A stretch of 64,000 nucleotides of DNA from Lepidodermella squamata (taxonomy: Eukaryota; Animalia; Gastrotricha), in contig JBLDXI010000003.1 in assembly GCA_047495785.1 (NCBI GenBank), positions 2,294,001-2,358,000 on the forward strand, given 5' to 3'. Position numbers and translations under genes: made by a program. Below the pieces are notes generated by a model. It did no database searches. It saw only the letters and a program-made list of their open reading frames with translations, and was not told the DNA's origin. Below, piece by piece: positions 9,492-57,508 of this stretch (its first letter is position 1; every line of letters starts with the position of its first letter).

Positions 9492-12400
9492 TTAATTAGC
9501 CTGCTTCCCGGTGAGAGAGCGCAACAATTGCGAAACGCGCACGGCTCGGCAGTACTCAGCCTGCATAATCGGCGTGGTCCCATCGCAGTCGGCCATAGTC
9601 AGGAGAGCGGGAAACTTCTTGCCAAGATACTCGACAATAGCCAAGTTTCTATCACCGTTGATGCAGTACAGCAAGGCGGAGCAGCTATCTTTGTCGCAGC
9701 GAAACGGGTCAATGTGATACTTCTCAACCAACAACTTGACAAGGTCCAACGAGCCAGAACCAGCGGCGAAGTGCAGCGCGGTTGTTCCGTTGTTGTCCAC
9801 GGCGTTCAAATCGCAAGATTTCTGCAATAAAATTTCGGCGATTCTTGCATTGCCAGAATGAACGGCGGCGAGGAACGGCGTTTTGTTGTCCAGATTCAGC
9901 CTAGGCGAGTCGATAAGGTCCGGTATGATGCTGAATAAAATTTCGAGAATTTCCGAAAACATTGCGGGATCTTCCGACGGGATGGCAGCATGGTACAAGG
10001 TGTTGCCTGTAAAATCAACTGCTCGGCAATCCGCGCCGTTTTCGATTAAATACTTGACGATTTCCGGATTCCCGCGGCGGACAGCGAAGTACAACGGCGT
10101 GAGCTTGCCGTTGTCGAACTGGTTCACATCGAATGAGGCGACTTCGACGAGGTATCTCACCAATTCGAAGCCGCCGTCGTCCTTGTGATAAGGAAATCGT
10201 AACAAATTTCCACCGCAAGCCAGGTGTAGTAGGCCTCGACCCGGCGAATCGCAATCGTGAATCGAATCCGGATGCTCCTCGAGCAGCAATTTCAGCGTTT
10301 CGAGCTGCCCGCCAGCCGCCGCCGAGCACACCGCGTTTGTGTTGAATAGTATGCCGCTGTAGAGAGACAACCGATTTTTTGTGAACAGTTTAGCCTCCAT
10401 TTCTCCGGTGAGAAATTTAACGACTTCAAAATGGCCATAAGAAGCCGCCGCACAGACCGCGTCGATGTGGCCGGAGCCGTGGCAGTGGCTGGCCATGTAA
10501 CGGCCGGCACCGGGCGGGAGGCGCGGGTCCAGGCACATGGCCTTGACCACCTGCAGGTCGCCGGTGGAGACTGCTTCGAAGAAGCGATCGATTTCTCGTG
10601 GTTTTTCGTAGCTTAGTTTCGTTGAAGCCTGGATAAAAAGGAAAAATTTAAATTCAACTTGAAAAAACTTCAAGGCACGAATTTCAAAAATTTGAAAATT
10701 CAGATCCAATAAGGTTACACACATCAGTCTTTGCTATTGCTAAAAAATTATGAAATTCTAAAACAAAAGCAGGAATTTTGGAAAATTAGCGGGGGATTTT
10801 GGAGGCTCATTCGCTCAGCACTGCGGACATCCGAGATTTTAACTAGTCTTACGGCCGAACTTTGGAGAAAATCAAGAACCAATTGAATACATTAACAAGA
10901 ATAATGCGTTGAAATTATGGCCGTTTCTAATTTGAGAAATTTAAAAGTGTTTCAATTTTTTTGACCAGGAATTAATTACCGAAAATCATGAAATTTTTAA
11001 GAAAAATTCCGAAGAGAGCTCTGAAATTTCCAATACTAAAATTACAATTTTTTTTATTTCGAAAGGAAAATTAGCAAAATTGAAAGCACACTTGAACTTC
11101 GACTGGTGAACCCTTTCCTCGAATAAGTTTTTAGAGGTGCGAAATGGAGCCGAAATTAACAAATTAATAAGGGATCATCCTTTTACCGGAACCGAATTTA
11201 CTGAGAGCGAAACCTAATTTTGTAATTTTCTCAGTGGCCTGTAATCACTTTTCGAATATTTCTTGGGTATCAAGATTGACGGCAATAATTCTAAAAGATT
11301 TCCAGTAAATTCAGCGTAACATTCTCTATAAGTGTTCAATTCAAAACTCATGCTTCGCCTAAAATTCGTAGAATTATTCAAAAAAGGAATTGGCAGATTT
11401 TTACTTTGGTTGTAAAATTGCTGTAAAATTGGCTCCGCTCCCGTTATTTGGTTCCGGTAAATGATATTCTGATTAATAAGGTCCCTTGCAAGCAGAAGGC
11501 TTAAAATCAGCGCAACAAACGGCACTGAAATTCATCCGATGAACCAAATTAAGAGTACGCAGTAAAAATAGTCGAGTTATTGGGGCCACAAAAATTTTCA
11601 ATAAAAAAGCCGAAATAATATTTCATTCAATTTTTTGTTGAAAGCTTTGAAGCCTCATACTTTTTAGGGGGCGCAAGTTAAGATTAAAAATCCCAATTCC
11701 CAATTCTCAATTTTTTATGACATAAGGATGAGTAAACAATTTAAAACTAACGATTCTCCTGCCAACAGGTTCGCCGGGTACAGGTTCGGCATTTTCCAGC
11801 TGTTCAGGTTCGTCTTCGGCGATGCGAAGCTTGAGGGAAAAAAGAAACGATGCAATTTTCCGATGCACATCTGTGGCGATTAAAATTTACCTCTCTATCA
11901 ATCAACCAAATTTGTTCAAACAGCTAGTGGCCTCGGAAAGCGAAGCTCGTTCTGGGCTCTCGTTCATTTTCTTCAATGCGTCCAGTTCAGATGAGATGCT
12001 GTCGCGCAGAATATTCTTACCAGATTTCCGCGCAGCTTCCACACGCTGGCTAAACTAGAAAAAACATCACAACGTAATAATTTCCGCAAAACTCAATCTT
12101 GAGTTTACTAGGTACTTAAACGTTTTATTGAAATGTTGACCTTACTGAATCTTAAGATTCCTGACCTTTCTAAAAGGTTCCACTTTAAAATTAAAATTAA
12201 AAAATTAATCCACTAGAAGCGCCTTTTCAGACCGTTTAAAGTATGAGCCTTACTTATTAGTTGCATACGTAAAATATTTTGAGCAAAAAAACTTCAATTA
12301 TCCGCTGCTGAAACTTCTTTCAAGCAAGAATAGACAGAAACGCTTACTGAAAGTGCGAACATTCCGACCCATTTTTTTATTAGCTTCATGCTTCAGCCAT

Positions 12401-12999
12401 TTGATAAAAATAAAATGATAAAAGCGAAATTTTACAGCTATGCTGAAGTGAAATGACCCAATTTTAATTAGCTATATTTTGCCAATCATTAAAAAAAAAT
12501 AGTTAAAATTTGCGAATTTTATTTGTCGGTTAAACTCGACACTATGAATTCTATAAAATTCAACAAAAAACGCATGCAATTATTTTTAGAATTTTGTATT
12601 AATTTATCACTTGTTACCGGTGAGGGAATTACTGATTTCATCATCGGAAAAATACAACAGAAATCAATATTTTATCGAATATTTTGGCAGAATAACAAAA
12701 ATAAAAAATAAAAAATCTCAAAAAATAAATATGGGGCGATGGGTGATTTAAAGGTAAACTGAACTGGGTAAAAGTGAAGGGGAACTTACATTCAGGGCAA
12801 TCCAGCTCGACTCGAGTCTCAAACGCTCGGCATGAGCCAATCCACACGGCTCACAAAAGTCGGCGCCGCAGTGACTGCACGATTCGGATGACGCAGCTGC
12901 CTTCGTGTGCGGGCATTTCTCGCCGGGGATCAGATCGATGGATCCGTGTTTTTTCACCACATTCTCAACGGCTAGGTTGGACGGCCAAAAGAAATTCAT
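9492..12999 (-). pseudogene. TRIM-like B-box / coiled-coil / ankyrin gene, copy A (no RING exon found; frameshift in coiled-coil exon)
   Basis: Exons ~12999-12790 (CPH..CSHC..FCEPCGLAHAERLRLE), 12054-11891, 11829-11752 and 10628-9492 (about 8-9 ankyrin repeats: TPLYFAV, TPFLAAV, TALHFAA). The 12054-11891 exon is 164 nt; adding 1 nt restores LFEQIWLIDRE, matching the paralogs. Confidence 0.7.
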
Positions 13000-14775: not shown

Positions 14776-15427
14776 AGGTCTGCGCACATACTCGTATGAA
14801 AAAATGTGTATGTGATTTGTAATAAGTTTTTTGCCGGGGTCGTATGTGTTGGCGAAAAAAATCGCATACAGACCCGTTCACAAACTGATTTCTTTTCTCC
14901 TTGTATGTGATTTTTTCTGGTCGAAGATGCCGCTGAAAAAAATGGCCATCTTCGATGGGGCTCGAACCCCGTCCGCCTGCTAAGCAGGCCAGTATAATAG
15001 CAACTGCACTATGTTGCCATCATATTTATCTGTCGCTATAAATAGGCTAATTATTGGTTGGTAGTATCTATAAAAGCCATGCGAGTTTTCTGGGTCAAGT
15101 GCGGGCATGAGTCATTAACCTTCGACTTGTTTTTCGACGCTTTTATCAATGCATTTTTTGCCTTAAAGCCTAATTTATAGGTCACACATTAAGCTTGACG
15201 GCTTAGCCATGTCGATATAATTATCGATGTGTGCGAAGTCGTCAGAAGTTCGATTCGACGTGCCGCCATCCCTTTTTTAGACGATCTATTCGGCCAGAAA
15301 AAAAAATCACATTCAAGAAGAAAAGAAATCAGTTTGTGAACGGGTCTGTATGCTTTTTGCTGTATGTGTATGTGTTTACTCGCATACGCATGAGAAAAAA
15401 AAAAGAAACGAGTTTGTGGGAAGACCT
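14776..15427. mobile_element. PIF/Harbinger-type MITE with internal tRNA-like modules
   Basis: Termini AGGTCT...AGACCT with 3-bp TSD TTT/TTT. Imperfect ~100-bp TIRs shared with the element at 17344-18124 and a solo end at 62294-62397. Confidence 0.7.
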
Positions 15428-15777: not shown

Positions 15778-16160
15778 TTAATGAAATTTCATCGGGATAA
15801 GCAAGTCATGAGAGCAAGGTCCAGATAGCTTCGAAATCGGATCAATATCAAATTCTTCATCGATAACAGCATTCACTGATAGAATTCGTCGTTCTTCGAG
15901 TTTCATTTTCACATTTTCCAACATAGTTTCGCGAGCTTTGGTAACTGAATTTTGAACCGACTTCAATAATAATTCAAAATGAGAATCAATTTCAGCGGTT
16001 ATTTTCGACATAAATTCCTACATTTTTTGGTCACTTTCATTTCAGCTAGCTTCTTGTCGAAGGAATTCGACAAAGCCCTAGAACGTTCTGAAAACTGCAG
16101 AAAAATTGCAAAATAATTCGTAAAATTTTGAAAATATCATAACAGACGTTGATTGATAGA
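15778..16160 (-). pseudogene. Fragment of a TRIM-ANK paralog (coiled-coil exon plus end of B-box exon), copy B
   Basis: MSKITAEIDSHFELLLKSVQNS...IDPISKLSG closely matches copy C (34339-34665). Frameshifted near 16030; no ankyrin exon follows. Confidence 0.75.
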
Positions 16161-17343
16161 TAACAATATCCCTGAAAACATATTGTTAAAAATCTTCTAC
16201 GTTTAAAACTGAGTAAGACTTATTTAGGTTAAAAAGAGCGATTTAGCCTTGTCGTATTTCATGCGAAAAATGTCTATTTTTGTTTGATTAAATAATTAGA
16301 TCTGAATCGGAATGACCTTTTGAAAGGTTCCACTTCATCGCCCCAATATTAAAGCCTAAAATTACCTCAAATCATTATGCAGTCGATATTTGAACACATC
16401 TCGGTGATAGCTATGCACAAAACACACCGATACCTGTTTTCAGCTCGAAAAAATGTTATTCATAGCCCAAGTTATGTCCGGAATATTAGGAGGAATAAAA
16501 TGATTCCTGCTCACCGTCGGATAGGAGAATATGGGGCGCGCGGATCGGGGGTCGGCTTCCGCCTAACAACAGTCCCCAGTACCCGGGACCTGCCCACACC
16601 CTGTATCACCTTGTGTGGCAACACGTCGTACACGATGTCGTTCGTGTTGCGACGTAAGAGACCGCGTTAGGCAGTACTTCCATTCTGTTTGTAATAAAAT
16701 ACTTGGTACTGGTAATATAAGCTACTTTTTATTTGCGGGTAATAGCATCATTATTGCGGCGCATCCGATACCGAACGGTTGCAACGCTACCAGAATGCAG
16801 AATGCGTACTACGCACAAACGCTTCAGACAATTTCTCCGTTATCATGGCTAAATTCTTAAGATCAACCAAATTTATCCTCCTCTTCTTGATTTCACCTTC
16901 GTTCCCTTCGAGCGTAGTCTAGGATAATTCTATCAATTTTATAATTATAATATATAATATAATTTTTATTATTCAATTCTATCAATATCCATAACTCATA
17001 GGGTAAAGTCTCTGTCTCTCTCTCGCACTCTCTCTGTATAGTGACGTTGAACCATGACTATCCACCACTTACTGTTCAAACATGACCAGAGTCTGCGTTC
17101 GAATGGGCTTACTTTTTAGTTTCCCATTCCCGGAGCCTAATTTTATGCGACCCATGCAGTTATCATCACGAAAAATGCATATTACGGAAGTATGGACTAT
17201 GAGCCAATTTTTCTACTATCATGAAAATGCCAAGAGAGCACTTATTACGCGATTAGTTATAAACTATTTTGTGGTTATCCTTCTCCATTATCTCGCAGCT
17301 CACAGGCATTTCGATATATTTTTAAATTTTATTGCATGAATAA

Positions 17344-18124
17344 AGGTCTCCGCACAAACTCGGTATCTTTTTTTTTGCTTACGCATACGGCCAATTACTT
17401 ACGCATACGACGAAAAACATACGACCACATACGGACCCTATTCACAAACTCTGCATGCGTATGCGTTATGTTTTTGCTGAACGGCGTTGTCACCTAAAAA
17501 AGGCTTGCTTTGACCGGGGATCGAACCCGGGTGACTTGTTTGTGAGATCGGCATAACACCGATTACACTAACAAGACGCATGATTTTGAGTTGTAGTAAT
17601 CAGTACTTGACGGATCACGCATCGTGATACAATTATTAATTAATATAATTGGTAATTATTTATAGAGCACTTAAAATTTCTTATTTATTTATCCCAAATG
17701 ACCCCAAAAGGTACAGGGAATTAAAAAAAATTCTTCTGAATTTTTATGATTTTTCCTGAATTTCCATCGAGTTTTTGATAATTATTCAATTAGTCATAAT
17801 AATTAATATTTTCAACTTCAATGTTCGCAGAGTTGTGATGGTGGCACGATTAAAACCGGAGAAATTATCTCACTGTTTGCGTAAGTCGTTGTGGCGAGGT
17901 TGGTTATTGACTGGCCTCGACGATGGGAGGCTCGGGTTCGAACCCCGCTCACCACACGACTTTTTTAAGCGATCAGGCCTCGTTGCAAAAATACATAACG
18001 CTTACGCATTCAGAGTTTGTGAATCGGTCGTATGTGATATGTTTTTCTTAAAACATGCGAGCGAGACAAACAACTTAACGCAAAACTTGTCTACTTATTT
18101 CATGCAGAGTTTGTGCGGAGACCT
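17344..18124. mobile_element. PIF/Harbinger-type MITE with two outward-facing tRNA-like modules
   Basis: TIR AGGTCTCCGCACAAACTC...GAGTTTGTGCGGAGACCT with 3-bp TSD TAA/TAA. tRNA-like units at ~17500-17578 (-) and ~17885-17966 (+). Confidence 0.8.
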
Positions 18125-19701: not shown

Positions 19702-20837
19702 GCCATTTCTGGGGCTTATCAATTTAGTTATCGTTACTTAGTTAATTAGTTAACCAATGGAGTTTCGCCGTCAACGAAAATTGTTAGTTCATTTCGGTTT
19801 TAAGTGATACATTTTCAGAAAACTTTGAAGACCTCTTGTTTCCTAATTCAAAGATTTATCCGCCAAATCTTCCTGGGGCGAGATCTACTTTCAATAATAT
19901 TACATGTGCATGAATATCATTCTATACTTTTTCGTAGAAATCAGAGGAACTTTTAATTTAGAATGGCTCGTTTCTAAATACGTAATAATAATTCATTAAA
20001 ATCTTATTGCAATATCTCTCGCAATTTTATATTCTGCATTGTTGATTAGGATTATTATACTTCAACTTTTACTCGAATTCGGCACTTGAGTTATAGCTTA
20101 TTGGATAAAGATTGGATATTGGATATGGATTTGGAATCGGAAATGGAAAATTACGGCGTAAGGTCGCTACTATACTATTGCAGAGTGCTGGTTCTTTCGA
20201 TATATTCAACCTGTTATCGCCATTTCTGTTAAACAAAGTGTGATGAATTGTTCTCTTAGTTTCATTTCCTTTGTTCATTTTCAATTATTTCGCTGCATTG
20301 AAAATAAAGATTTACGGCACCGAAACACGGATAATAATAGTTTTTCATTGGTCACGGCAGCTCGTTTTTGCTACCTGTTAAATCTGCAATCGAAGAATTC
20401 CAGAGAAGAAAGCGTGAAAAAATTGAAGAATTATAGGAATGATAGGCGAAAAAGCTGAATTTCTCTTTTCTCTCCAAGAGTCCAAGAACGCACGATAGCA
20501 ATCGCAGCTAATGGCAATTTTATAGCCCTTGAACCAAACATAGTAATTTGGGATGCAACCGCTCCCCAGTTGTAAACAACCGCAATGTAGCGGTATAATG
20601 ATATATAGAATTATGCACTAGTACAGGCGGTCCCTTACGTCGCAACACGAACGATGTAAATAGGTGCATCACACATTTGTTAGACAACCAGCTGACATGT
20701 TCACACCGAAGAGAATGCATAAAGATCTGCTGTCGTTACTGTTACAGCACACGTCAAGAGTAGCCTGTAATGCAGTCAACTCTTCTGTAAATCTCGTCAC
20801 GGCAAATTTTAGTTTTACAATAACTATCCACCTTCAA

Positions 20838-21461
20838 ATGTTCAGGTTAGCTGTGTTCCTCTTGCTCGCTTCAACTACTCAGGGTTTCCAGGAGGATACA
20901 AGTTTTTCTCAAGCGGTGGTAACAGCGACCATCTTCTCATCATCTTCTCCGAGAATACGGACAACCAACCGTCCATCAGCTACAACAGATAGAAAACCTC
21001 ATTTCACCTTTTGCAACAACAAGGATTTGTTCGGTTATTCTTTGTCGGCGCATCCTGAAGCAACATATGCCTGCTGCAACTATAAAGATGGAACTAGAAA
21101 TACAACAGGTGTTTATATCAAGGCAACTGGAGTATGTTGTCCAAATTCTTTGAGCGACAGTGCTGACAAATGTTGCGGTGGCTCATACTACAATTCCAGC
21201 TACCAGACCTGTTGCAACAACAAGGATTTGTTCGGTTATTCTTTGTCGGCGCATCCTGAAGCAACATATGCCTGCTGCAACTATAAAGATGGAACTAGAA
21301 ATACAACAGGTGTTTATATCAAGGCAACTGGAGTATGTTGTCCAAATTCTTTGAGCGACAGTGCTGACAAATGTTGCGGTGGCTCATACTACAATTCCAG
21401 CTACCAGACCTGTTGCAACAACAAGGTTGTGTTCGGTTATCCTTGTCCGCAGTATCCCTAA
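20838..21461 (+). CDS. Intronless secreted Cys-rich protein with di-cysteine repeats (galaxin-like)
   Basis: Signal peptide MFRLAVFLLLASTTQG, Ser/Thr-rich linker, then repeated CC motifs (CCGGSYYNSSYQTCC). Exact 201-bp (67-aa) tandem duplication. Confidence 0.7.
   Translation: MFRLAVFLLLASTTQGFQEDTSFSQAVVTATIFSSSSPRIRTTNRPSATTDRKPHFTFCNNKDLFGYSLSAHPEATYACCNYKDGTRNTTGVYIKATGVCCPNSLSDSADKCCGGSYYNSSYQTCCNNKDLFGYSLSAHPEATYACCNYKDGTRNTTGVYIKATGVCCPNSLSDSADKCCGGSYYNSSYQTCCNNKVVFGYPCPQYP
21011..21425 (+). repeat. Exact 201-bp tandem duplication inside the galaxin-like CDS
   Basis: TTGCAACAACAAGG recurs at 21011, 21212 and 21413. The two full units are identical by eye. Confidence 0.9.
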
Positions 21462-23398
21462 GCAACATTATGAAAGCTGATTAGGTTATTATTCGATATA
21501 AATACTTGATCGATATTTAATTGTTAAATATTAATATATTATTCTCAAAACCGCATCGACGCTTATTATCGATAGCCTGTCATTAATCATTATTGTTTAC
21601 TAAACAATTGTCACTATAAATAGCAGTGAATTTGAAATTAAACTGAACTCGTATCGTCATAAAACTGGGACTTATACTCTGCTTACCAACATTGGTTATT
21701 GGCCCAGAACGTTGCAACTAAGCACCATATTACCATAAGTAAACTCTTTGTTTTCTTATAATTTTGCTATAATTGCCTCGGCGATGGTTGCAAGTAACAT
21801 TACAATAAAATAAAATAAATAAATAAATAAATAAAATTTACCGCTGCATTTTTCGCTCTATTTTGTCTTATTTTCGCTACCTGCATTTTTGTGGTCATAT
21901 TCATGCGATGACTGACAACCACCACCACCTTAAAAGTGATCCTATCACTCTAACTGGCGCTGATAACTGGACAGCATGGTTCAAGCAAGTTCGCATCAAT
22001 CTCGTGTCGGCTGATCTCTGGGGTGTTGTTGCTGGAACCGACCCCGAACCCGACTGGGACCGCGTGGCTGCGCCGACGGTAGAACCGACCGCGCACGTCG
22101 CTTGGTCGAAGAAGCACCTCCGCGCAACGGGCAACGGGTCACATGATTTGCAGTATTTCCGCGTCGATTCTAGGGCTGTTTCCTGACTCGGACAAGACAA
22201 TCATGACCGCACTCAAAGCTCGGTTTGAGAATCCATCGACTGGTAACGTGATGTTTTTAACTCAACAGCTTTTCACTACTACGCTGCGTGAGGGTGAATC
22301 GCTGACAAATCACCTCCATCGTCTGAGGCGAATTCGTGATCAATTGACCGCGTTGAGCTCGAACCTGCCGGCTTCTCAATATATTGTCATTATTTTGAAT
22401 AGTCTTCCGGCCAGTTATAACCAGGTGGTAACGGCGCTGCGAATTACGAAATCTCTCGATTTAACCGATGTCGAAGCTGCTTTGGCAACCGAGGATCTAC
22501 GACGTCTTACGCTGAAATCGAACAAATCGAATGGAGCGAGCGGTACGAGTTCAGACGTGGCTTTGAAAACAGGCCACGGTAAGTTCCGTAACAATAAGAA
22601 GGCCACCATGGCATGTAGGAACTGTGGTCGGCTGGGGCATTTCGAGCGCGAATGCCGGTCTCCGAAGGAACCGCAAGCGAATTCTGGCGGCAATGGTCGT
22701 CAAAACGGCGGTTACAACGGCTACAATCGCAACAATGGCAACTACAACAACGGAGGTAATCCAGGCAAGTCGTTGGGTGGCTACTACGGTAAGCTGCGCG
22801 CCAAGATGGTGACGGACGACTACGAGGAGCACGGCTGATGGTGCACTACGACGACGAGTACGAGTCGAGCGAGCGATGGGTGCTCGACTCCGGCGCTTCG
22901 CAGCACATGACGAACAAAATCTCGATGTTCTGGTCCTACGAGGAGTTACCTGAGGGCAGCGAACCGGTCCGTGCGGCTGATGGAAAGCCGGTAGCATGTC
23001 TTGGCATTGGTACATTGGCGCGGCTGATGCTGACGTGATCCGGCCAACGAAATTCGCGGCCATCGCGGCCGAACCGATTTCTCTGTGGCACCGTCGTTTG
23101 GCGCATTGCAACGAGCAGAAATTGCGAACTATGGCGAAGCAAGTTGATGGTTTCAAGATCGACCCGAAATCGCAACTTGGTTTCTGCGAACCCTGTGTTG
23201 CTGGCAAACAGTCACGTGAACCTCATTTTTCTGTGAAGATTCGTAGCAAGCGCGTGCTGGAGCGCTGTTTCATCGATCTGTGCGGGAAATTCAGCGTCGA
23301 GTCGTTCACGCGCAAGTTGTACTTCGTTTTAATTATGGATGATTACAGCCGCTGGACTCACATTCAATTTCTGGCCAAGAAATCCGACGCTATGGCAT

Positions 23399-23896
23399 TA
23401 TAGGGCGACTTTGCAGTCATGTGATCAGGGTCAAAGTCCACCGATTTTTTTTGGTCTCGGTCGCGCGGTCGCGCAGTCGTTGTGGTGGGGCGGTCGTGTT
23501 AAAATTACTCGCTAAAAAAACAAGAGTGAAAAAATGATGCACCGCCAGTAGCCGAACTAAGGATGTTGGAAAAACAAGCCATGGTTTCTATCCACTACGC
23601 CACTAATTCATAGCAATTAGGAGTTTCTATCAGTGGATCGATTGAAGAAAATATGGGCATCAATATTTTCCCGGCCGACTGCTTCATGTTGGTGGCGTAA
23701 TGGATAGAAAACATGGCTTGTTTTTCCAACATCCTTAGTTCGGCTCCTGGTGGTGCATCATTTTTTCACTCCTGTTTATTTAGCGAGTAATTTTAACACG
23801 ACCGCCCCACCACAACGACTGCGCGACCGCGCGACCAAGACCAAACAAAATCGGTGGACTTTGACCCTGATCACATGACTGCAAAGTCGCCCTATA
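23399..23896. mobile_element. Foldback MITE (~500 bp, near-fully palindromic) inserted in the copia integrase
   Basis: TATAGGGCGACTTTGCAGTCATGTGATCAGGG...CCCTGATCACATGACTGCAAAGTCGCCCTATA. Arms of ~210 bp. Integrase resumes afterwards (KSDA|IDAFK). Exact ends and TSD are ambiguous. Confidence 0.85.
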
Positions 23897-24060
23897 ATAT
23901 TGATGCTTTTAAACTTTTTCATACTCAGATAACTGCTCGTTTGAACACTAATTTGGTTTATCTGAAGTCGGACAATGGCCACGAATTCAATGGGACTTCT
24001 CAATGGATCTTCTCAATGGGACGAATACTGTCGGCTGCATTCAATCTCTCGCGAGTTTAG

Positions 24061-24840
24061 CCCTTTCATGGCCGAATTATTTATCTCCGGTAGAAAAAAT
24101 ATTTGACAGGAGTTCTAGGGGTTTTCGAAGGCCCTGATCACGATTTTGAAGCCCGCTTGCCTCTATCCATCACCGTTAAGGCTGTGCAAAAAGTGGTCGA
24201 AATCGCCCTATCGGCCCAGCTGATTTCAGCACATTTTTCAAACACCCTAGTTTCAGCAATAGCTGCTGTCAACATTGCATTTTCGTGTTCTAAGCCTCTC
24301 CCTTAACGGTCCCTGAAATTCTCCCTTCATTATTCTGAGAAAAGAAATCAGTTAAACCCAGTTTTCAAAAATCAGCATTTCGATCAGTATTCAGCCAAGT
24401 CAGATTTTTCACACGCGGCCGTTTTGAAGCACAAAAAACCCGCATCTCGCCTGTATATCGTCTGGGCCGATAGGACGATTTCGACCACTTAACTAAAATC
24501 AAGGCAGCGCTGTTAGTTTTTGTCGAAATCAGATAAAAATTTGCACACAGGTCAATAAGACTATGCCGGACACTGTAGTATTTTTTGTATGACCGGATAA
24601 TCAGATGGGGTTACTTTAATTTCAATTTGAAAAAAATCGAAATTTCATACCTCAGTTATCAATTTTAAAATGGTCATATTTTCAAAATGGTGTAAGATAG
24701 CGGTCTGATTGTTTCAAATTCTTGTAGCCAACATCGAAAAGTAGTATTGCTATAAAGGGCGATCAAAAATAAATCAAAATGAAATGTTGGTGCACTGTCA
24801 AAGTCAAAATTCCGAAATCGTCCTTATGGCCATGAAAGGG
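24061..24840. mobile_element. piggyBac-like non-autonomous element inserted in the copia integrase
   Basis: TIR CCCTTTCATGGCC...GGCCATGAAAGGG with a 4-bp duplication TTAG on both sides. Removal restores integrase REFS-VPYVPQQN. Confidence 0.85.
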
Positions 24841-25438
24841 TTAGCGTGCCTTATGTGCCGCAACAAAACGCGATGGAGCGACAAATGCGCACTATTGTCA
24901 AGGGCGGACGGACCGCTCTGAACGAGACTGGCCTGACAAAGCGGTTATGGCCTTGCTGTTTCGAGTACGTTAATTACTGCCGCAATCGACTTCCGACTCG
25001 GGCGCTTAATGGCAAGACGCCGTTCGAAATGATGTTTGGGAGCATGCCGGATATCTCACGACTACGTCCATGGGGATGCCGCGCGTTCGCTTTCACCGAA
25101 TAATTTCGCGATAAATTGGACTCGAAAACTGAAGAATTCATCTTCGTTGGAATTCCTGAGAATTACGATGGGTATCGTTTGTTTTCGCCAGCTAATAATA
25201 CGTTTGTTAATAGAAAGTACGTTAAATTTGACGAATCACCTGTTATTCGTCAGCCTGACTTTTATCCTGGCCCACTTACTGTGGATGATGAAAACAAGAC
25301 GGCTACTCATCCAGAAGCGCCTCTTAGCGCAGCGCCGGCCGCCCCTGTTAAAAAGGCGCCGCCTGCGACACCGCTGAAAAGCACATCTTCGTCTAGTACT
25401 GCGTCTGGCGCACTTACGGCGCCGCGTAAGACTACATA

Positions 25439-26400
25439 CAGTAAAAGTTGTGTAAACCGGAGTCGTCTAAACCGGAATTTCTCTAAACCGGACGGATTTC
25501 AGTGGCTCTTGCAGAAAGTGTGCACTTTACATTATAAAGTTGTCGTCTAAACCGGACTCTGTAAACCGGACTTCTCCTAATTCGGAGCGATTTTTGACGT
25601 GGGAAGGTTAAAAAGTCCGGTTTAGACCCTTTTCCCCTTGTTTTTCGTCATTTTCAAAGCGCTTGGAACCCGGCTCTTCCGAGGCGTTAACTTTCGTGTT
25701 GCTCATGAATGACAGCCGAAGAACGGATGATCCACTGCGCCACCTCCGATTATGAGATGACGATTAAATCCTATGCTTAAATACTTTTTGTGAATAATAC
25801 GATATCACTTGTTACAAGATCTGATAGATCAGTGAATCTCTAAATTAAGGTAGAGGATTGGGATTTTTAGGAGTTTCAGGAACTTTGCGAAGTCCATTAA
25901 AATGAAAAAATGCCGGCTAAATCGTTGGCCGAACCTAGCCGAAACATTTAGTTCGACAGAGTTCGGCCAGGACTTGAAACTATATCGAAGTTGTAAAACG
26001 AATCTAAAAAATGCGGACTCCAGCAGGTTCCGATATGACTAATTAGTTCGGCCAAGCACGACTATGTCAACAATTGTTCATCCACGTTCCTCCACGCCCG
26101 AAAATGTTTGACCACATCTCCAGACGTTCGGCCAGGTTCGACCAGACAAAATGTGCTTCGGCTAGGTTCGGCCAAACAAAATTATATTCGAACGGGTTCG
26201 ACTAAGTGGTGCCGATGGGGCAGGAAATATATTTTTTTAATATCTTAAATCTGCTATCAACCGTATCATAAATCTAAGTGCAAATGTATACTTCGATTTC
26301 CTAAGCCGGACTTAGTCCGGTGGTCGTCTAGACTGGATTCGCTCTAAACCGGACGATTTTGCCTGGCGCCCTGCTAGTCCGGTTTACACGACTTTTACTG
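25439..26400. mobile_element. Tc1/mariner-pogo-type MITE inserted in the copia IN-RT linker
   Basis: TA|CAGTAAAAGTTGTGTAAACCGG...CCGGTTTACACGACTTTTACTG|TA. Subterminal CTAAACCGGA repeats. Inner tract of GTTCGGCC repeats at 25920-26200. Confidence 0.85.
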
Positions 26401-26868
26401 TATTCGACTTCGGCTACGTCTTCATCTGCACCGCGTCCTACTTCTGCGCCTGCGCCTGCGGAGTCGCGCAAATCGGCTAGGGTGCCGCCGCCGAAGGAGG
26501 AGGGTATAAATTACACGAAACTTGGTGTTCAAGGTCCGAAACCTACAGCTCTATCTACGAAGCTCATCTACGAAGACAGCAAAGTACACGTTTGATGACT
26601 GGGATGATTTCGACACATTTGGCACGGCAGCTCTTACTCTGGCACCGGAAAATGACGAGCCTACGACTGGCCCGACGGCCTTCGCGGTAACAGCTATGGA
26701 TGAGCCTGCTACGTTCGCCGAGGCAATGGACAGCGTTCACGCCGCTGAGTGGCACAAGGCCTGTCAGTCGGAGTATGACTCGCTCATCAAGAACAACACC
26801 TGGAAGCTGGTTGATCGCCCGCCGAACAAGCCAGTTCTCAAGTGTCGCTGGGTTCTTCGTGTCAAATA

Positions 26869-42242: not shown

Positions 42243-43972
42243 CTTATTTCGATTTTTTGTTACGATTCAATTTTTTGCAGCCTATTCGATACCTTCTTTT
42301 AACCTTCTTTTGACTTCATTATTACTTATTTGAAACTAATTGACGACTTTGAGCTGAAAAACCTGAATGACACAACTACAACAACAACAACAACTCAGTC
42401 TCAGAAAACCTGCAATAAGTAATAATGTGCTGGATAATGTCAGCAGGAGCAGGAGCAGCAGTACGAGAATAAGATTGTTAGCAACGAAAATAGTCGATCT
42501 ATCCTAACCTTTTTCCTTGGATGGCTACCTGGCAAACTGATGGCGAGGCCTTAATTAGGGGTTAATAGATGAAGTAATGAAAAATTAGTTGGAATAAAAT
42601 GCATCAGGCATTCGCTCGCAAATTCGTGCACAATGCAAAATCCTTAGGCTAATACATCAATCCCACGGTTACCTGTGTTGGGAATTGGGCATGCTCAGCA
42701 GGACGGGATCGTCTAGCTGTAACTTGGAGTAACAACTCATTACTCATTACCCCAGGAAACCCGTGTGGTAAAAATTTCATATGGTCGATTCGAGGCCAAC
42801 TCGACTCGAATGGTCGGGCTCGATCGCAAGACTAACAACAAACAGCAAACAGCAAGACTAAAAAAGCATTTAGTTAAGCCTAGGTTTTGATCAAAATTCT
42901 GCGAATTCGGTGCAAAATAAATAAATCTCACGTTGGTGGCAATCCAATTGCTTTCCAGCCTCAGCCGTTCCGCATGAGCAAACGAGCACGAATTGCAGAA
43001 TCGCCTGGCGCAATGCGATCATTTCTTACCAGTATCAGCTTCCAAGTGGGGGCAGCGATCGCCCAACACCGCTATAACATTATTATCTGCTTTCAACATA
43101 GGTCGAGCGGCTTCGATCGCCTTCGCAAGTGCGAGGTTGCCACGTAATCCTGTAAGCAATTAGCTTTTAGTAAAACTTAGCTTTTGAAGCACTGAAATTT
43201 AGGTTCCAGCGCTTAACTTGAGCTTTTCAGATGTTGAGATTCATTATTTTCGATTTTTCATCATTTTAGATCGACAACAGTCGGGATCAATGGTTTGGGA
43301 ACGATATTGAATGAATTATAAGATTTAAAAGAGAACTAGGAACTCAAGCAACTATATTTCAGGGAAATTTAGTTTCGGAACCTTAAATCCACAGCGCAAA
43401 CTCATGAATTTTATTATCTACTCATAAAAATATACCTTTTACGGCTGAATCTTTGATAGTAACCAAATTACTTGGCTTGCCACAAATCAAGCAATTTATT
43501 TCGAAAGTAGAACATGACGGTTGGATTTGTTTTGGGATACAATTTTGACAAATCGTATGACCGCATGCTTGAAAGAAGACTGGAGCGGAGTCTGATGCGC
43601 AGCCACCGTCGCTTGAAATGAAGCTTCTCTTGCAAATGTCGCACCTCAGAGCCTGTTCAACAAAAGTTAAATTAGATGCTTAACTGGAAATTCGGAAGAT
43701 GAAATCACTCACATCTACTAAAGTACCATCGATAACGATGTGTGTGTCTATTCTCCGCCGCTTTTCCAATGAACAGCAGCAGATATTTTCAGATTTTACG
43801 CAATCCATTATTTTCGAACAGAAAGGACAGGATAAAAATTACGAAACAAGCTAAATCGAAGACAAATGTAAATAGAATGAAGCGCCTATGAAACTAGGAA
43901 GTCCCTTCTGTTTATGTAAGAGTAGAACTTGTAATATTTTGATATTGTTCTCGTTATCGTGATACGCTTCTA

Positions 43973-45678: not shown

Positions 45679-45756
45679 CTCGAAGTATTAAAAGAACTTA
45701 CAATGCAAATACAAGTAGGCCCAAACTTTTGGATTACTTTATTTCATTTTAGGAGC

Positions 45757-48161: not shown

Positions 48162-51100
48162 TCAAAATTTATTCCGCTGTCCAGCGGTGTGATAAACCAG
48201 TGTTTGAATAACGTCCATGTGATGCGGATTCTTGGCGATCTCCGCCATCGGTGTAAGATTTTGTTTGTTCCGCTTCAAGGTTAAGTCAGGACAAGTGGAA
48301 CACAAATAATCGGCGATTGCAGCGTTTTTAACTCGGAAAAGCAACGATTCATTGTCGTCACCAACTTCCGCCGGTTTGAAGCCGTGCTCTTCGATCAGCA
48401 TTTTCACAAGTTCCAAAGAGTTGGTTCTAGCAGCCAAGTGTAATGCGTTTTCTTTGTCTATCCAAAGGGCCTTTAAATTACAACCCTTTTGTATGAAAAA
48501 TTTAGCTGCTTCGAAATTGCCCAAACAGCAAGCTTGGAGAAAGGGCGTCAAGTCATCATCTCCCTCGACATCTATGAAATCCGGGATGACTTCGGAAAGA
48601 ATTTCAAGTACCTCCAAATCTTCATGCCTCTCGCATCGGAAATAGTGGAATAATGTCTCATCGTCGTGCAAGACACGGCAATCAGCGCCCTTCTGGATCA
48701 AATACCGGACAATATCGGCTTTTGCGAGCCGAACAGCTTTCATAATCGGAGTTTTATCACCTTTGCCTCGCGAATTCACGTCGATTTTCACAGTTTCGCA
48801 CAAGTATTTCACGACCTCGAGGCTTCCATAGCAAGCATGTTGAAGCAATATATTTTCAACTCCTTTCATCAAACCTGGATACGATTTGGTCAGATATTCA
48901 ACCACCTCGAGATTTCCACCCCTAACGGCAGCAATAAGAGGATTGAAACAGGCTTTTCTAATGCTTTGGAAAGGAAGATACGAAGCTGGCATTTCCGATC
49001 CAGTTATCGAAACCAACAGTTTGAGAATATCAAGGTGGCCGTGAAAAGAAGCTGAGCATAGGGAAGTTTGCTCTTCGACAGGGTTCACGTGATTAGCTAT
49101 CAATTCGGTACATCCAGCCGGTAGTTTTTCGTTGAACAAAATCTTCTCAACAGTTTTCGATTGACCTTGAGCGATTGCGCCGAAGAATTTGTTGAATTCA
49201 TGGGGTAAGCCATCGAATGACTAAGAAATAACATATTAACAATAAAAAAATTTCTCATTCAAAGTTAAATGATTTTGATCATTTTAGGACGAATTCGGAA
49301 TTCAGATTTTCAGATGGACGCTGAGGAATATAGTGGGGTGTACTTTTTCCCGCAATTATGTTTTCATTTCATCAGATCATGGAAATAACATTTTTGTATT
49401 ATGCGGCAAATGCGACTGCAATCTATTATATTATAGGATTCAGTTCTGATATCAACATTTGGAAATCGAATGGCAGAGCGATGGTAGGCTTTCATAAGCA
49501 AATACATGAAGCTTGCTCTTTTAGGCAATCCCCAACTAACGAAGAAACTAGATAACAAGAAGCATGACGAAGTGACGAAGATCAACGGTAGTTTCCCAGT
49601 ACAGTACGCCTACGATAGAGGCACCCTTGTACCTTGTATTAACCTTGTACCTTGTATTAACCTAGTTCTACGGTAGAACTACGGTAAAGCCCTACGATAC
49701 GGTAGTTTTCCGTAACAACAATATGTGGCTATAATCACTACAATTAATTGACCGACAATAATCACTGACGCCGTCCAATTAGCTGCTACCACCAACACAT
49801 TCAACGTCAAAAATGGAGCCCTGGATATCGAACACATTGAAGATCTCAAATCAACCAAAAGTGGGCTAGACATCAATTTTTTTTTCCAGTCCCCCTTTCG
49901 CTCATGGGCAACTATACGTTGGACTTCCCAGGGCCGCGGATTGCTGCAATGTCAAAGTTATGGCGTCAAGCGACTATATTATCAATGATAAATATTACAC
50001 AAAAAACATTGTAACACAAAAAGAGGTTTTGTAAACCACTTGCTTTTTGAACTGTTCACGTTTTCTGGAGCTAGCTGAATAAATTACAGTTTCGCGGCAT
50101 CACAAATATCGTTCACTGAATGCTGTGGAAACGACTCAATTTCCTTCCAAATAATCTGGCGATTTCTGCGGAATTTCTTATAACTACTGAATTCACGTCC
50201 GAGAGGTAGCTTTTTTCGGACCGCTTTTAACCACTCGAGCTGGCGGCGGCATCGCGAAATTTTAATGCGATTACTGTCGATTTCTGTTCGAAAAATTCGC
50301 CAGCGACGAAGCCGATTACCCTCAGTTTTGGAATCGGCTGAACAAATTCAGTCTTTACGACGCAGTGCTGTTGATCGGACGGGCGTTTGAATTATTTCGG
50401 CAGTCGAATACCAGTCGCAAATGCTGAGATAAGACCCTAGGCGAAGCTTCACCTCCCGGTTATTTCGGCGATGCAACGCAGGCTGAGAACACCAACTTCT
50501 GACAACGATGCTGCGACCAAGGCATGGCTTAATGCTGATGTTGAGATGACACTCGATGATTGCCTGGACGACGTAGAAACTGTTCAAGTCGTGGCTGAAA
50601 CTGTTCAAAGCGAGAATCGTTATCAGGGCCAACGCGAAGCCGCAGCCGTGGAAACAATTGAACCACAAAGCCACGAAGAAGCGATTTCTGCAGATGAGAT
50701 ATTTCTACAATTTTTCGCCAATTCCAAATCACCAAACCAGCAATCGGCGCAACTCATCGCACAGAACATTAAGGGCAAACCCTAGCGAAAAAAGACATTG
50801 CATGGCCATGCGTTGGCAACACAAGCCAACGTTCCATGCAACGGCAACGCATGTCAATGTGATGTCAATGCATGTCAACGGACATTTGACAATGCAACCA
50901 AGATGCGTTGGCATGCATTTTCGATGCATCGACCACGCATTTTCAACACAACGGCAATGCATGGCCATGAAAATGTGTTGTAAAATTGTAAAAATTCTGA
51001 ACAGGCAGCCTGACTTTAGCCGGCCATTCAGCCGTCCTGGGGTATTTTTGTTTATATAAATGTGCATGTAGTTATTTGCAAAACCACGCGATTTGTTCGC

Positions 51101-54100
51101 GGCGCCAGCGCGCGCAAGATCGGGAAAATTTTGCTGATGAAGATCAGAGATTGGCGGCGTTTGAGGGTCAGTTACCTATTAATTATCCCGCCTTGCACAT
51201 TTTTTGGCAATTTTTTTAATAATTGCATGAAATTATAAATTTCATGTTATTAAAGTTCTTACTGCATGAAATCGCCGTCTATTCGTCTAAGCTCTCCTAC
51301 TAGTCTTGGTCTGGGAAGATCGCGCTCTCGATCTTCTCGTCCTCGGTCAAAGTCGCCGCCACTTGGTTCAAGTTCTCAACTTCGTGCTGCTCAATCGGAA
51401 TCAAAATCGGCTCGCTCTCTGTCAAATTTGCCATCTACTCGACCCAGATCGAAATCGCGAAGCAGATCGCCGTCTACTCGATCAAAGTCGTTTTCTCCTC
51501 CAACAACGGCAACTGCTCCTCCGCCAAAATCAGCACATCGGCGATCAACAGAAGGCCAGAAATTGTCATCGATTTCAAGTCTTGGCGAAGTGTCATCTGA
51601 TTCACCAACGGCTGCATCGATATTTGTCCGAGCAGAGTACTCCGATGTTGAACTTTTATCGGAGAGTTCGAGATCGAGGTCACCTTCTCCCGAAAACGAG
51701 GGTTCCCTCATTATCTCAAGATAGCATAGGAAGGGGTCGATACCACTCTCGCTCTACCGCAACAATATGTTGTAGTATTTTTATGTATTATTTGTATGCC
51801 TTAAACAGAGTTATTGATTGTTCTTGAAAAAATGGCGCGTGAACTTGATCAATTCTTCGTAATTTCCATCGACAATCGTGAATTTACCCCAGTTGAGCCA
51901 CGAGTTTTTGTGTAATTCTCACTTGAGCAACGGCGTGTTACATAGGCGCGCACGAGTTGAATAAGAACGAGCGATAAACAAATTGATACATTATATAAAA
52001 CAGAGAGTCTAGCCACCAAAATTCACCTATTTCTTCTTTAAACTGCTCATTTACATCGCTTTACAACCGTTATACTACAAAAATGGTCGAGCTAAAGTGT
52101 GTCGTATGTAATGAAAAATTTACTGACAACCGTGGCCGAGCCAACCATCACTGTTTAAAACGCCAATTGACGAAAGAGCAAGTACAACAGCTCGAGGCTG
52201 AGGCGCGGTTACGAGCTTCAAACAACTCCGAAGACATTGAGCTACAACAAGACAATTCTATCCCGGTGTCAGTTGCAGTAGTGACCCCACAGCTTTAGCA
52301 GCGGCTAGCAGTGGCGACGAACAAGTGCTCAAGCCGAAGACGGCCCGCATCCGGTTTCTCGAGGCTAAGCTGCTGCGCAAAACAAATCGCAACGACGGGG
52401 CGGTGCCTAATCCACCGCAAGATATTCCGACTGTTGAGTCTGAGCCTGAAACACTCGAGCCGGACGAGCCGCCTGCTGATGCCTCATACGTTATTTACGA
52501 GGGCATGAAAGGTACCACCAAAGGTTACCCTCTGTTGTGTTTCGCCGACGCTCATTTCCCGAACTGTTTTACCTACGCCGGCACCGAATTTTGGCGGGGT
52601 CAGGGGCGGCGGCTGTAAAGTTAAAGCATCAATCGTCGACGGCGAGGTGAAACTTCGAGGTCAACTGGAGCCGCCAAGCCATTTGCCTTGGCACGCAATG
52701 AGTGCGTAATAGTGTATAAAATTAGTGGTGCTCTGTCCTTTACCTAGGAGTGGCTCAGTGTCTCGCTGTTCCACTTCTAGATAAATTTATTACGATGCTA
52801 AGGACTTCGCGAGCGCCCTGTTTACTGGTAACTGGGCGATTACTTATCCGCGTCACCTGCTATTCCCTGCGTCATCAACTCGTGAGTTGTAACCAGAGAG
52901 CTAGTTTAGTTTTAAAACTAGCTCTATGGTTGTAACAAATCAACAAATACATCGTGTTTATCGCCGTAGTCGCAGTTGTTTAATTTCAATTTTAATAACT
53001 CCCCCACGTTTAATTATCGCTGCAGTAATGTATTAAGAGAGAAGCTTTAGCAAAAAAAACGGCTGAGGTTATTTCTTACCAATTGCATCTCGACTGGGTC
53101 CTTCGATTTGGGTTCGGTGAAGTAATTATTGGGCTTGATAACAGCAATCTGATCCACGTATCCCAGCACACACTTCATGAGGTTGTTATCGATTTTCAGC
53201 GATATCTCAGGCTCCGCTATCAGTGAGCTCGGATCTTCCATCATCCTTAGCTTTAGGTTAAATTATTTCAATATATAAAAAAGTTAATACTAAATTTTAT
53301 GATTACCTTTTTCTCAACAAGCCAAACTTTCGTAAACATTCTTGCTGATTTTTGAAGGCTATATGACATCAGGGGCGTTGACTGCTCATTTCGAGCTTTC
53401 AACTCTTCCAAGACCTTTTCGACATAATATGGCTCCAAGACGCACGATGCGTTAATCACAGTCGCCCGCTCATCAACCAAGTTGGTTAATTTTTCGAGCA
53501 ATTCAGCCCGATTCTTCTCGATAGTGAATCGCATGGTTTCAAGCAGGTAGTCGCAATGAGCGTTGATTTCCGATGCGACTTTAGCCTTCTGAGCGTGAAG
53601 TTTGTCGAAAGCGGCAGTCCTTGAGCTTGACTTGGAAATCACAGCTGAGTTGAAACGATCCGCGAACTAATATAAAAATATAAATAAATACAATATTTTT
53701 CAAATTTCCAACCCAGTAACGATCCGAAAATGTGGAATCAATTTTTATTAATTTTTGGATATTTCAGATTAAGTTAACGCCACAGTGAATGATAAATCCA
53801 AGCCCACTCAATATCAACCAACTCGTTCGGCATCTCATCACAAGTTTCTAACACCAAAGTTATGAATTCCGCCCCAGAGTTGAGAATCGACGAGTCCTTG
53901 GTTCCGAAGCGTCTGTAATATGCTGCCCAAAAATTCCGTGAGAACAAAGTTTGCGGGGAAACTAAACGATTCGCTCTCGATAAGATTTTTATCTGATATT
54001 TTTGTTAAATAAATTCCCCGTTCAAACTTGGCCATCTAAGGGCGACGGCAACTGCTTCCCTCCTGATGGCGCCATTTTCTCAAAATCTTTGACAGCAATA

Positions 54101-57100
54101 CTAATAGGTAATAAGTAACTCTTTTAAACAACTCTTTTGGGCACAAATTCTTCGTCATCCCTCAGCGCGTGTTTGAAACGTGACACGCGCAATGCAAGTG
54201 AAATGAGAAATGACACTCTTCGACTCTATAATGCTGCTCATCCTGATCGAATCGCCGTTCAAGGTAGTTGTCGCCTAATCGATCAACTCAACAATTATCG
54301 GCACATTGTCGCTACAAACAACCGTGGCCAAAAAAGTGCCGGGTCAAAAAAACAGGATTTTTGATGATACTCCTGGCTTCATTGAAACACCGATTCTGTT
54401 TGATTCTCAATTAACGTCGTCTGTGTATCGAGACTTTCCAATGGGGAGAGAAGGATTAAAGCTGTCCCCGCTGTCCACTGCCTCCTTCCTAATCGTCGAT
54501 GCACTACTTACCTACGGCTTTTCTGTCAAATTCGAGAACGTTTTCCGCGTCTCAGACCAGCAAGTTTTATGGCCGAACGAACGTCACACCGTGCCTTCCG
54601 GGAAGTCTTTGAGATGTTACCATACGAGGCTGTCTCTTCCATCTAATGCAGAATCTTCTCAAACGGGTAAGAAATACGTGGTCCAGCCACTTTTTCAGCG
54701 ATTTCCGAGGTTTCGAGATCTGTTCGTATATTTTAGGTCCACCTAAATTTTTGTGACGATTTTGGTGAATACCCCATACCACCAGCCCCGGCGCTGAGAA
54801 CAATGTTTTACTAGCCGTTAATTACAGCCGCGAATCACTGGCAGTATCGTTTCTACCGCAACGAAAGCACCGCACTTTGACTTCGAAGGTCGGTCAATCC
54901 GAATTCGAATGCAGAACCTCGATCGCTCGCAAGTCTGCAGTCTGCCATATTCCAGAGCAGATTTCTCTTAATGCGAGAGGCGAAGAAATTGTTCTGTTCA
55001 ATCCGGAGTACGCAGCGAGCGCGCGATTTTTGATATCCGGAGCCGCTAGCAACATCGAGGTCCTCACTCAAAACGACCATTGGGACAACGACGGTACCTT
55101 CAAGATTACTCCTTTGCCGAACATCTTCTACCAGGTGTACATCATTCATGTGGCGGCTGATCAAGGGAAGACGCTCAAACGTTTTCATTTTCATTTTCCC
55201 TTGGCTTGGTAGCAAAAGCCTCTCTTTTAACTTTAAGATGAAGGATAATGAACTAGCTGTTGCGGATTCTGTCAAGGGCCTTGGTATTATTGTAGACAAA
55301 GATTTGACGTTCTCCTAACACTGTATTGCCTTAGCAATGAAAGAAGGAATTAGTGGCGGCGGTCGTTTCGGCCAAGAACAAAAAGAAGGTGAGGAAATCA
55401 GCTGAAAAAATGTATTCTGTCATCTATCATATACTTTATATATAGACATCGGATGTCGACGCTGCCTCCGTCCTGATTGACGATGATACATGCCGCGTTT
55501 GTCTCAAAAGATATCACGAAAAAGACCCATGGGTCAAATGCGGCCGATGCGGGTTTTGGCTTTGCCAGCCTTGCTTTAACTTCCATAAGGTTCCCAAAAA
55601 ATTCCACAAATTGTGTACTCCTGTGCTCAAGTAATTTCTCTTACCTGCGTTGCACGTAGAAGAGGCCTTGTTCACGCTTTCAAAGCCGTAAAACATGGTT
55701 AGTAAAAACCAACCCATATAAACGCCTAGAAGCCATTCATGGCTTTAGAGTGTAACGGCGTAATTCATTTGCGCCTCAAGTCCTACAACACTGTAACTCA
55801 AGTCACGGGGACGCAAAAAGTCACACGTCCAAATATTAAAATGAATGATTGTCACGAGTTGGTGTTTGAGAAAAAATGAAGAAAAGTAGCAACGGTGATA
55901 ACCGTATCTTCACCAGTGACATGTTGTAACCGCGCGTGACAATGCTCCAAAATATCGAAATAATTCAAAGAAAATGAGTATATTTGAGATGTAACGGGGC
56001 TCAACACAGAAGTCACACGACGCTATTCGACAGTAATGCCATTATCAAACCCATGATCAGCCGCCGGGGCGCCGGCCTGATTCCATCCTTTGGTCAACAG
56101 ACAGTCGCTTCGGAGGAAGCCGGCCTGATTGCATCCTTTGGTCAGCAGTCACTCACCCCGGTACTTGTTAATATCAGTGGCCAAAATGTTTCTGTCGAAT
56201 TATTACAACATCTGCTGGCGCGGAGCAGCCGCAGGCGGGTAAGGAGACCGATGATGATGTTGATGATGACGCGACGACAACGACGACGACGACGAGCAGC
56301 CGGGCACCAGCCAAGAGCCGGCAAAGCGCAAACGAGGTCGGCCCTTTGGTTCAAATACTCCCCCTTCATCAAAACGATTAAAACAAACAAATCAACCCAA
56401 ACAACAGTAGGCTACCGCGCAACATAGTCATCGAGGACGTGGAGGCGTTTCCGTACCTTGGCAGTGTCATCAGCCTAGACGGAGCTCACGCGGATATCGC
56501 CTTTCGACTCGAGAAAGCTAGGCACGTTTTCTCCTCGCTGAAGGCGGTCTGGCATTCGAAACAGCTTAGCAAGGCGACCAAGATGTGTCTCTACAACTGC
56601 ATGGCCAAGGCAGTCTTGTTATACGGTTCAGAGTGCTGTCGAGAGTTGGGAACTGACGTGATTCATACCACAACCGTTGTCTCCAACGAATTCAAGGCAT
56701 ATACTGGCCGAAGATCTTTTCAAATGAGGAGCTCCACCGCATTTACAAATGCCGGCGAATATCGACTGACATCAGACTCCTCCGACTCCGCTGGCTAAGG
56801 CACGTACTGCGGATTGACGCCAGGCGTACTCCCAGGCGCCAGGGACTACTACTACTACTACTACTAAGTTAAAGAGTTAAAAAGCTTACATTTGATGCAA
56901 TCCAACTGCTTTCCAGCCTTAATCTCTCGGCATGAGCGGCAGAACAGGCCTCGCAGAATAGCCTGGCACAGTGCGGACAGTTTTTCGTCTTTGGGGCTCG
57001 CATATGAGGGCAGCGATCGCCCAAAACCGTAACGACTGTTTTATCTTCCGCATCCATCATAGGCCAAGCGGCTTCCACCATTTTCACTAGAGTAAGATTG

Positions 57101-57508
57101 GCACGGAAACCTTTATAATAAAAGATAGAAATGGCTATTGAACCAATAATTGATTGTCAAGCAAACTCTTTTTGCTGTCATTCCGCCTGTTGCAAATCGG
57201 GCATTTCGTCTCGGAATTACGAGGCGGATCCGATTTCGTGAGACAATCGCGACAAATCGTATGACCGCAGTCTGGATAGAAAACCGGTGGGAAGTTTCTA
57301 AAATTTGAAACGATGCCATGAGCAATTGACATGAAGCCTTTTTTGCAAAGTTGACACCTCAGAGCCTGTTTAATGAAATGAGTATATGAAATAACATGCA
57401 AGAAAAGGTAAATAAGAAGCCACGCACATTTGGTAGGCATCCATCAATGATAACGTGGCTATCGGTTTTCCGTCGCTTTGGCATGGGACAGTTGACATCA
57501 TCAGCCAT
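48162..57508 (-). CDS. TRIM-like RING / B-box / coiled-coil / ankyrin E3 ligase, copy E (apparently intact)
   Basis: Exons 57508-57428, 57365-57167 (RING CQLC..CGHTICRDC..CPIC), 57110-56890 (CPH..CPHC..FCEACSAAH), 53666-53307 (coiled coil), 53250-53080 and 49220-48162 (ankyrin repeats). All GT-AG and in phase; no stop found. Confidence 0.85.
50270..50785 (+). mobile_element. pogo/Tigger-like transposase C-terminal remnant
   Basis: FWNRLNKFSLYDAVLLIGRAFE..RKC*, then AWLNADVE..LDDVETVQVV, resembling the region after the DDE core of Tigger-type transposases. Confidence 0.45.
52480..52700 (+). mobile_element. FLYWCH-like zinc finger remnant (probable MULE)
   Basis: TTKGYPLL..FTY..FWR..GCKVKASI..H across a frameshift. 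Confidence 0.35.
54877..55212 (+). mobile_element. MULE transposase remnant
   Basis: HWDNDGTFKITPLPNIFYQVYIIH matches the MULE first-catalytic-Asp motif (DGTFK..P..F.Q.Y.IH). Confidence 0.8.
56425..56866 (+). mobile_element. 5'-truncated RTE-type LINE with (CTA)n tail
   Basis: VEAFPYLGSVIS..RLEKARHVFSSLKAVW..KMCLYN..VLLYGSEC..LRWLRHVLR, ending in an ACT microsatellite at ~56844-56866. Confidence 0.8.

Follow-up and report, generated by a model that had tools for sequence, protein, structure and literature searches.

The closest described systems to the genes reported here are the TRIM proteins, which have been divided into classes I-XI (PMC10728303) and into subfamilies (PMC3503706). TRIM coiled coils form antiparallel homodimers, and the C-terminal domain is the part that binds the target (PMC10728303). 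Lineage-specific swaps have been described, such as the Branchiostoma TRIM-MATH genes that arose via recombination, and tandem clusters of RING-B-box genes occur in Caenorhabditis (Marin's survey, PMC3503706). The genes analyzed here lie in a 64,000-nucleotide stretch of DNA from the gastrotrich Lepidodermella squamata (GCA_047495785.1, contig JBLDXI010000003.1, positions 2,294,001 to 2,358,000 of the forward strand), and this whole stretch is referred to as the window. A first-pass annotation of the window had noted a tandem array of TRIM-like genes ending in ankyrin repeats and had placed this ending outside the known TRIM modules, which agrees with both sources: the word "ankyrin" occurs 0 times in PMC3503706 and once in PMC10728303, in an unrelated context and not among its TRIM C-terminal domains. 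The family thus belongs to no listed TRIM C-terminal class. As to whether the architecture is already described and widespread, no description was found in the literature on TRIM or B-box plus ankyrin, most subscription papers lying outside the search, yet the architecture is present in other animals.

When the window was translated in six frames and searched against itself, five copies of a six-exon gene emerged, all on the minus strand, between 9492 and 57532. The exons of this gene encode, in order, a RING, a B-box-1-like finger of atypical form, a long helical segment of the coiled-coil type, a linker and an arm of about ten ankyrin repeats. We consider it likely that these genes are a tandem family of TRIM-derived RING ligases whose C-terminal domain was swapped a single time for an ankyrin arm, in an ancestor common to this animal and at least two others, with birth and death of copies at the locus.

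The window family, as judged from its exons, shares with TRIM proteins generally a tripartite front, the order of RING, B-box-like finger and coiled coil in one chain, and a variable C-terminal domain. The TRIM-NHL proteins (class VII or subfamily C: TRIM2, TRIM3, TRIM32, Drosophila Thin/Abba and Mei-P26, C. elegans NHL-1) have, like the window family, a RING with flanking helices, a B-box-1-like finger, a long helix, a linker and a binding domain built of repeats. However, the window family ends in an ankyrin arm in all copies instead of an NHL propeller, it has one atypical finger with a C-x-H start and no eighth ligand, and it occurs in multi-copy arrays. An origin from Thin/NHL-1 in particular is possible and would be consistent with the finger of Thin. 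A RING and ankyrin repeats are also combined in one chain in the ligases BARD1, Mind bomb, plant XB3/XBAT and KEG. These proteins lack a B-box and a TRIM-type coiled coil, and have another domain order and additional BRCT, kinase, HERC or C-terminal RING parts. BARD1 was a weak generic match in the profile search for full-length relatives, but its C-terminal BRCT pair is missing in the window family, in which the gene ends after the ankyrins. Lastly, the ankyrin receptors of cullin ligases, which are often multi-copy, use an ankyrin arm to recruit the substrate (ASB, with ankyrin repeats and a SOCS box, FEM1 and poxvirus ANK/F-box proteins). They recruit a separate cullin-RING core, whereas the window family carries the RING in the same chain.

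The self-search revealed four ankyrin ORFs on the minus strand. Upstream of each, small exons encode the Cys/His finger and the helical segment, and three of the four have a RING exon as well. Copy E is the only intact copy among the five, with 2115 nt and 704 codons (704 aa), the sole stop being terminal. Its ATG at 57532 lies 24 nt past the end of the span given in the first-pass annotation (9492-57508), which otherwise located the five copies correctly. Exon 1 (57428-57532) holds the ATG and a basic KRRK patch and has similar exons in copies D and C; the patch (KRRK/KRRR in E and D) is a possible nuclear localisation signal. Exon 2 (57167-57365) encodes a C3HC4 RING (Pfam zf-RING_UBOX, 31.8 bits, above cut-off), and exon 3 (56890-57110) encodes the C-terminal helix of the RING and the finger, C-x-H..C-x-H-C-x4-C-x2-C-x3-H. 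The long helical segment is encoded by exon 4 (53307-53666), assigned by its hydrophobic period and its homology to relatives. Exon 5 (53080-53250) is the linker, with 47% identity to exon 5 of copy D, and exon 6 (48162-49220) contains the stop and an ankyrin arm of 352 aa, about ten repeats by length (Pfam Ank_2, E 3.5e-33).

Copy D (711 codons) is modelled with exon 1 at 43713-43808, a Pfam-supported RING exon at 43436-43652, a finger exon at 42932-43149, a helical exon at 39144-39494, a linker exon at 38924-39094 and an open ankyrin exon at 35793-36875. It is complete except for one in-frame TGA in the finger exon (43021-43019), which replaces an otherwise invariant Cys of the finger. A bypass of this stop via the adjacent GTAAGA was rejected, since the resulting 25-nt intron would break the frame and remove ligands. 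An Rfam scan of the window returned no element, SECIS included, at threshold. Copy C has exon 1 at 35218-35316, a RING exon at 34993-35167 (Pfam zf-RING_5, 32 bits), a finger exon at 34719-34939 and a helical exon at 34339-34665. Its exon 5 (34128-34288) is broken by a stop at about 34243 and loss of frame, and its ankyrin exon (30865-31940) by a stop at 31283 and a frameshift near 31200. Copy B (15813-16165) is a remnant of about 350 nt, comprising the end of the finger exon, an intron and the helical exon, with 80% nucleotide identity to exons 3-4 of copy C, a frameshift and a stop. In copy A, the finger exon (12790-12999) begins at an in-frame ATG and has no upstream acceptor AG, and no RING exon precedes it; a RING profile run over the window found only the three RINGs of E, D and C. 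The helical exon of copy A is shortened to 164 nt (11891-12054) with a frameshift near 11904, the short linker exon (11752-11829) has a tentative 3' boundary, and the ankyrin exon (9492-10628) is still open, with 378 aa (Pfam Ank_2, E 4e-40). The states of the copies are thus those reported in the first-pass annotation: E intact, C and D disrupted, A frameshifted and without a RING, and B a fragment. Two related inverted-repeat elements (14857-15358 and 17412-18047) flank copy B and may be connected with the rearrangement behind B and the RING-less copy A.

The introns are of the GT-AG type, mostly 49-62 nt long, and their phases (0,1,0,0,0) are common to E, D and C, so that the splicing of the ankyrin ORFs to the RING, finger and coiled-coil exons proposed earlier was recovered in the six-exon models. 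The copies are not chance assemblies, because four domains recur in the same order and with the same intron phases in three to four paralogues at 25-69% identity. The window proteins were absent from a 15-billion-sequence collection.

The joining of the RING, finger and helix to the ankyrins in one gene is well supported by sequence comparison, because relatives hold the helical segment and the ankyrins in one ORF and share the intron after the finger. In three relatives (L001, L005 and L008) the helical segment, linker and ankyrins lie in a single stop-free ORF. In the window, exon 5 ends in a donor, and read-through meets a stop after 5-10 codons. The ankyrin ORFs of E and D contain no Met for 77-87 codons, yet conservation between the paralogues begins at the acceptor, and the phase-0 donor and acceptor pair across intron 5 matches in both. 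The ankyrin exons match Pfam at E 1e-33 to 1e-40, and a homology search with the ankyrin exon gave generic ankyrin proteins only. A profile built from the first ankyrin repeats of the relatives alone found all four window copies (E 2e-10 to 5e-7).

These relatives were found with a profile of the finger exon, which identified six RING-plus-finger ORFs among 1.8 billion representatives. Their contigs came from Logan run SRR23086389 and from ENA assemblies ERZ23486764/787 and ERZ27332993/3047, the latter apparently from one animal, which is AT-richer. A GT donor follows the finger at the identical base in 20 of 20 distinct relatives, and an AG three codons ahead of the first RING Cys, as in the window, was present in 14 of the 20 relatives' RINGs screened. 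In the ENA animal the distinct copies number at least 18 and stand in rows of as many as about eleven, and this animal alone supplied the ORFs found by the profile search for full-length relatives (260-810 aa). Scans of JGI metagenomes and IMG/VR with the finger found nothing. A scan with P0122 mainly recovered ciliate RING-B-box-coiled-coil genes that have an ordinary B-box 2 and were rejected as family members. The contigs L009-L035 are spirotrich ciliate nanochromosomes, on which a RING-B-box 2-coiled-coil gene encoding about 600 aa is highly conserved. One family member of the ENA animal is located downstream of a Mei-P26 orthologue, 2.3 kb away on the same strand (L002, 3908-6844 and 9184-10241), and the NHL domain of this orthologue matches PDB 7nyq at E 2e-120. 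The shared introns, the homologous helical exons (hhalign E 5e-4 between window and relatives) and the homologous first ankyrin repeats therefore indicate that the fusion is old and common to other animals, with two extra introns between helix and arm in the window genes. The proposal that the family is lineage-specific did not hold, as arrays with the same introns are present in other animals.

Domain searches were run exon by exon. The RING exons of E, D and C scored above Pfam cut-offs, and all eight zinc ligands are present in each. For a predicted model of a relative's RING and flanking helices (pLDDT 88), the best structural matches were TRIM2, TRIM21 and TRIM69 (Z 11.0-11.5, rmsd 1.7-2.2). 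In an Atlas shape search all ten matches were RING/TRIM-type proteins, most of them from B-box or NHL families, and TRIM-NHL clusters led; one of the ten rows was an nhl-1 cluster, aligned across the RING only. A RING-plus-finger profile spanned the RING and B-box of TRIM21 (17-122) and TRIM2 (17-139), and those of TRIM3 and TRIM25. The Cys/His pattern of the finger, C-x-H..C-x-H-C-x3-F-C-x2-C-x3-H, is invariant across 15 copies and continues directly into the helix. It lacks the eighth canonical B-box ligand, the last His, which the invariant His within the C-x-H-C knuckle could replace, judging from the pattern. Alignment of the finger with B-box 1 of a Mei-P26 orthologue is weak (E 0.007). 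Exon 4 prolongs the helix of the finger by about 100 residues nearly free of proline, with a hydrophobic period of 3.65-3.7, in line with TRIM coiled coils, which are mixed heptad/hendecad. Pfam gave no meaningful match on exons 4 and 5.

Several of the results weigh against a TRIM-derived ligase. The finger matched Pfam B-box models only at E 0.002-0.1, under every cut-off, and its AlphaFold model (pLDDT 80) matched no B-box in the PDB (best Z 3.2). The helical segment had no sequence match to a solved TRIM coiled coil. At the linchpin position after the last RING Cys, E and C have Asn and D has Gly, whereas most relatives have Arg or Lys, and the Pro of the last RING Cys pair is missing in D and C. 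Because the finger model lacks a convincing PDB match, the finger sits in the TRIM B-box position but its identity as a B-box is unproven; of the B-box-like finger described in the first-pass annotation, the pattern and position stood, and the atypical form qualifies the rest. TRIM membership of the family is likely rather than proven, because the finger falls under the Pfam B-box cut-offs and has no structural match. Since the usual Arg/Lys is missing in E, D and C, the E3 ligase activity of the window copies is inferred by analogy and may be weak or E2-specific.

In the window, E and D are the youngest pair, with identities of 69% in the ankyrin arm, 63% in the finger, 55% in the helical exon and 44% in the RING, and dN/dS values of 0.21 (ankyrin), 0.18 (finger), 0.23 (helix), 0.19 (linker) and 0.46 (RING). 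As judged from these ratios the pair has been under purifying selection, with the limit that pairwise averages could hide a few selected surface sites. In the other window pairs, synonymous sites are at or near saturation. A near-identity tract of about 250 nt, from 49295 to 49050 in E and from 36951 to about 36700 in D (minus strand), starts shortly before the acceptor of intron 5 and continues through ankyrin codon 55, so that it spans the first two repeats. Synonymous differences in this tract are 0.06-0.21 per site against 0.5-0.8 across the remaining exon, which probably reflects gene conversion. In a tree of the ankyrin arms, the copies of the ENA animal split from those of the window and L001 with a support of 99/98, though on long branches, which suggests separate expansions in the animals. 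A tree of the fingers had no supported branch. Birth and death of copies, as proposed earlier, is supported by the tandem expansion and the decay of four of the five copies. Hypervariable ankyrin arms are not supported: the arm, earlier taken for the variable part, is the most conserved region between E and D.

Three other explanations were weighed. The RING, finger and helix exons and the ankyrin exons could be separate neighbouring genes. Intron 5 is indeed long (1.1-3.9 kb) and contains AATAAA hexamers in E, D and A, but that of C has no such hexamer, and the single ORF of the relatives, the matching phase-0 splice sites of E and D and the lack of an early Met make two genes highly improbable. 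It is a less remote idea, though still an unlikely one, that the proteins act chiefly as scaffolds or adaptors without catalysis, in which a weakly active RING is kept for dimerisation or E2 binding while a partner ligase acts. This would fit the missing linchpin Arg in all three window RINGs, the RING as the fastest-changing part between E and D, and copy A, which has no RING and nonetheless an open ankyrin exon. However, E, D and C retain all eight zinc ligands, most relatives retain the Arg/Lys linchpin, and active RINGs are known that have other residues at this position.

The genes could also be diversifying intracellular immune receptors, with every ankyrin arm recognising a protein of a pathogen, the role that PRY-SPRY has in TRIM5 or the fish finTRIMs. 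The independent expansions in two animals, the damage to most copies, a paralogue identity of merely about 35%, the conversion-like tract within the ankyrin arm and the SOCS-box gene that adjoins the array are in its favour. On the other hand, the copies are old, the arm is the best-conserved part of the youngest pair, and no 30-codon window between E and D had pN above pS. Positive selection centred on the C-terminal domain, of the TRIM5/finTRIM type, was thus not found in pairwise comparison. An immune role is possible, and this explanation as a whole seems to us somewhat unlikely. The broader proposal, that an undescribed ankyrin-armed TRIM class forms a germline-encoded, multi-copy repertoire of intracellular sensor-ligases in a group of microscopic animals, with arms reshuffled by gene conversion, is more doubtful still.

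The window has a GC content of 43% overall and features of an invertebrate animal: short introns, spliceosomal signals, remains of LTR and DNA transposons, and DOMON-PAN, Sushi, lectin-F5/8 and homeodomain genes. A large exon ending in a SOCS box (59116-60330, minus strand; Pfam E 1e-7) sits on the strand of copy E, 1.6 kb upstream of it; a second copy of this exon type starts near 63403 (minus strand), with a related 5' piece at 63242-63489. Between them, a gene with several divergent homeodomains (60725-62371, minus strand) contains an exact 225-nt tandem duplication (60920-61369). A decayed copia-type LTR retrotransposon (21900-27000, plus strand) with gag, zinc knuckle, integrase and RT pieces is split by a palindromic element (23397-23898). 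Two related-looking ORF fragments on the plus strand (37752-38180, inside intron 5 of copy D, and 58026-58466) share a YxxLRGxENL motif, which we take to be reminiscent of Crypton-type tyrosine recombinases (no Pfam match at 0.01). Secreted mosaic genes were found at 3679-7700 (plus strand; PAN, IgGFc-binding-like, SUEL lectin, F5-8 and Sushi) and at 1-2217 (minus strand; DOMON-PAN-vWA-like), and 20664-21468 (plus strand) encodes a secreted protein whose 201-nt tandem repeats match Galaxin-like repeats.

For the TRIM-derived, ankyrin-armed ligase that we favour, a mode of action can be proposed by analogy with TRIMs. The helical segment would dimerise in antiparallel orientation, leaving a RING at either end, and the linker would fold back to place both ankyrin arms at the middle of the rod. 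The arms would dock onto a protein substrate, and as molecules cluster on it, RINGs would be brought together, so that the E2-ubiquitin conjugate is activated and the target ubiquitinated. Each paralogue would then be the substrate receptor for its own target, and the targets may be the animal's own proteins. The surprise is limited, because other invertebrates are already known to have exchanged domains on TRIM scaffolds. TRIMs are classified by their C-terminal domain, and a multi-copy, intron-conserved RING-finger-coiled coil-ankyrin family would add a class; it would mean that an ankyrin arm for target binding is accepted on the TRIM scaffold and that the family is a marker for a clade of small animals. 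Should the arms recognise pathogens, the family would represent a new innate receptor repertoire.

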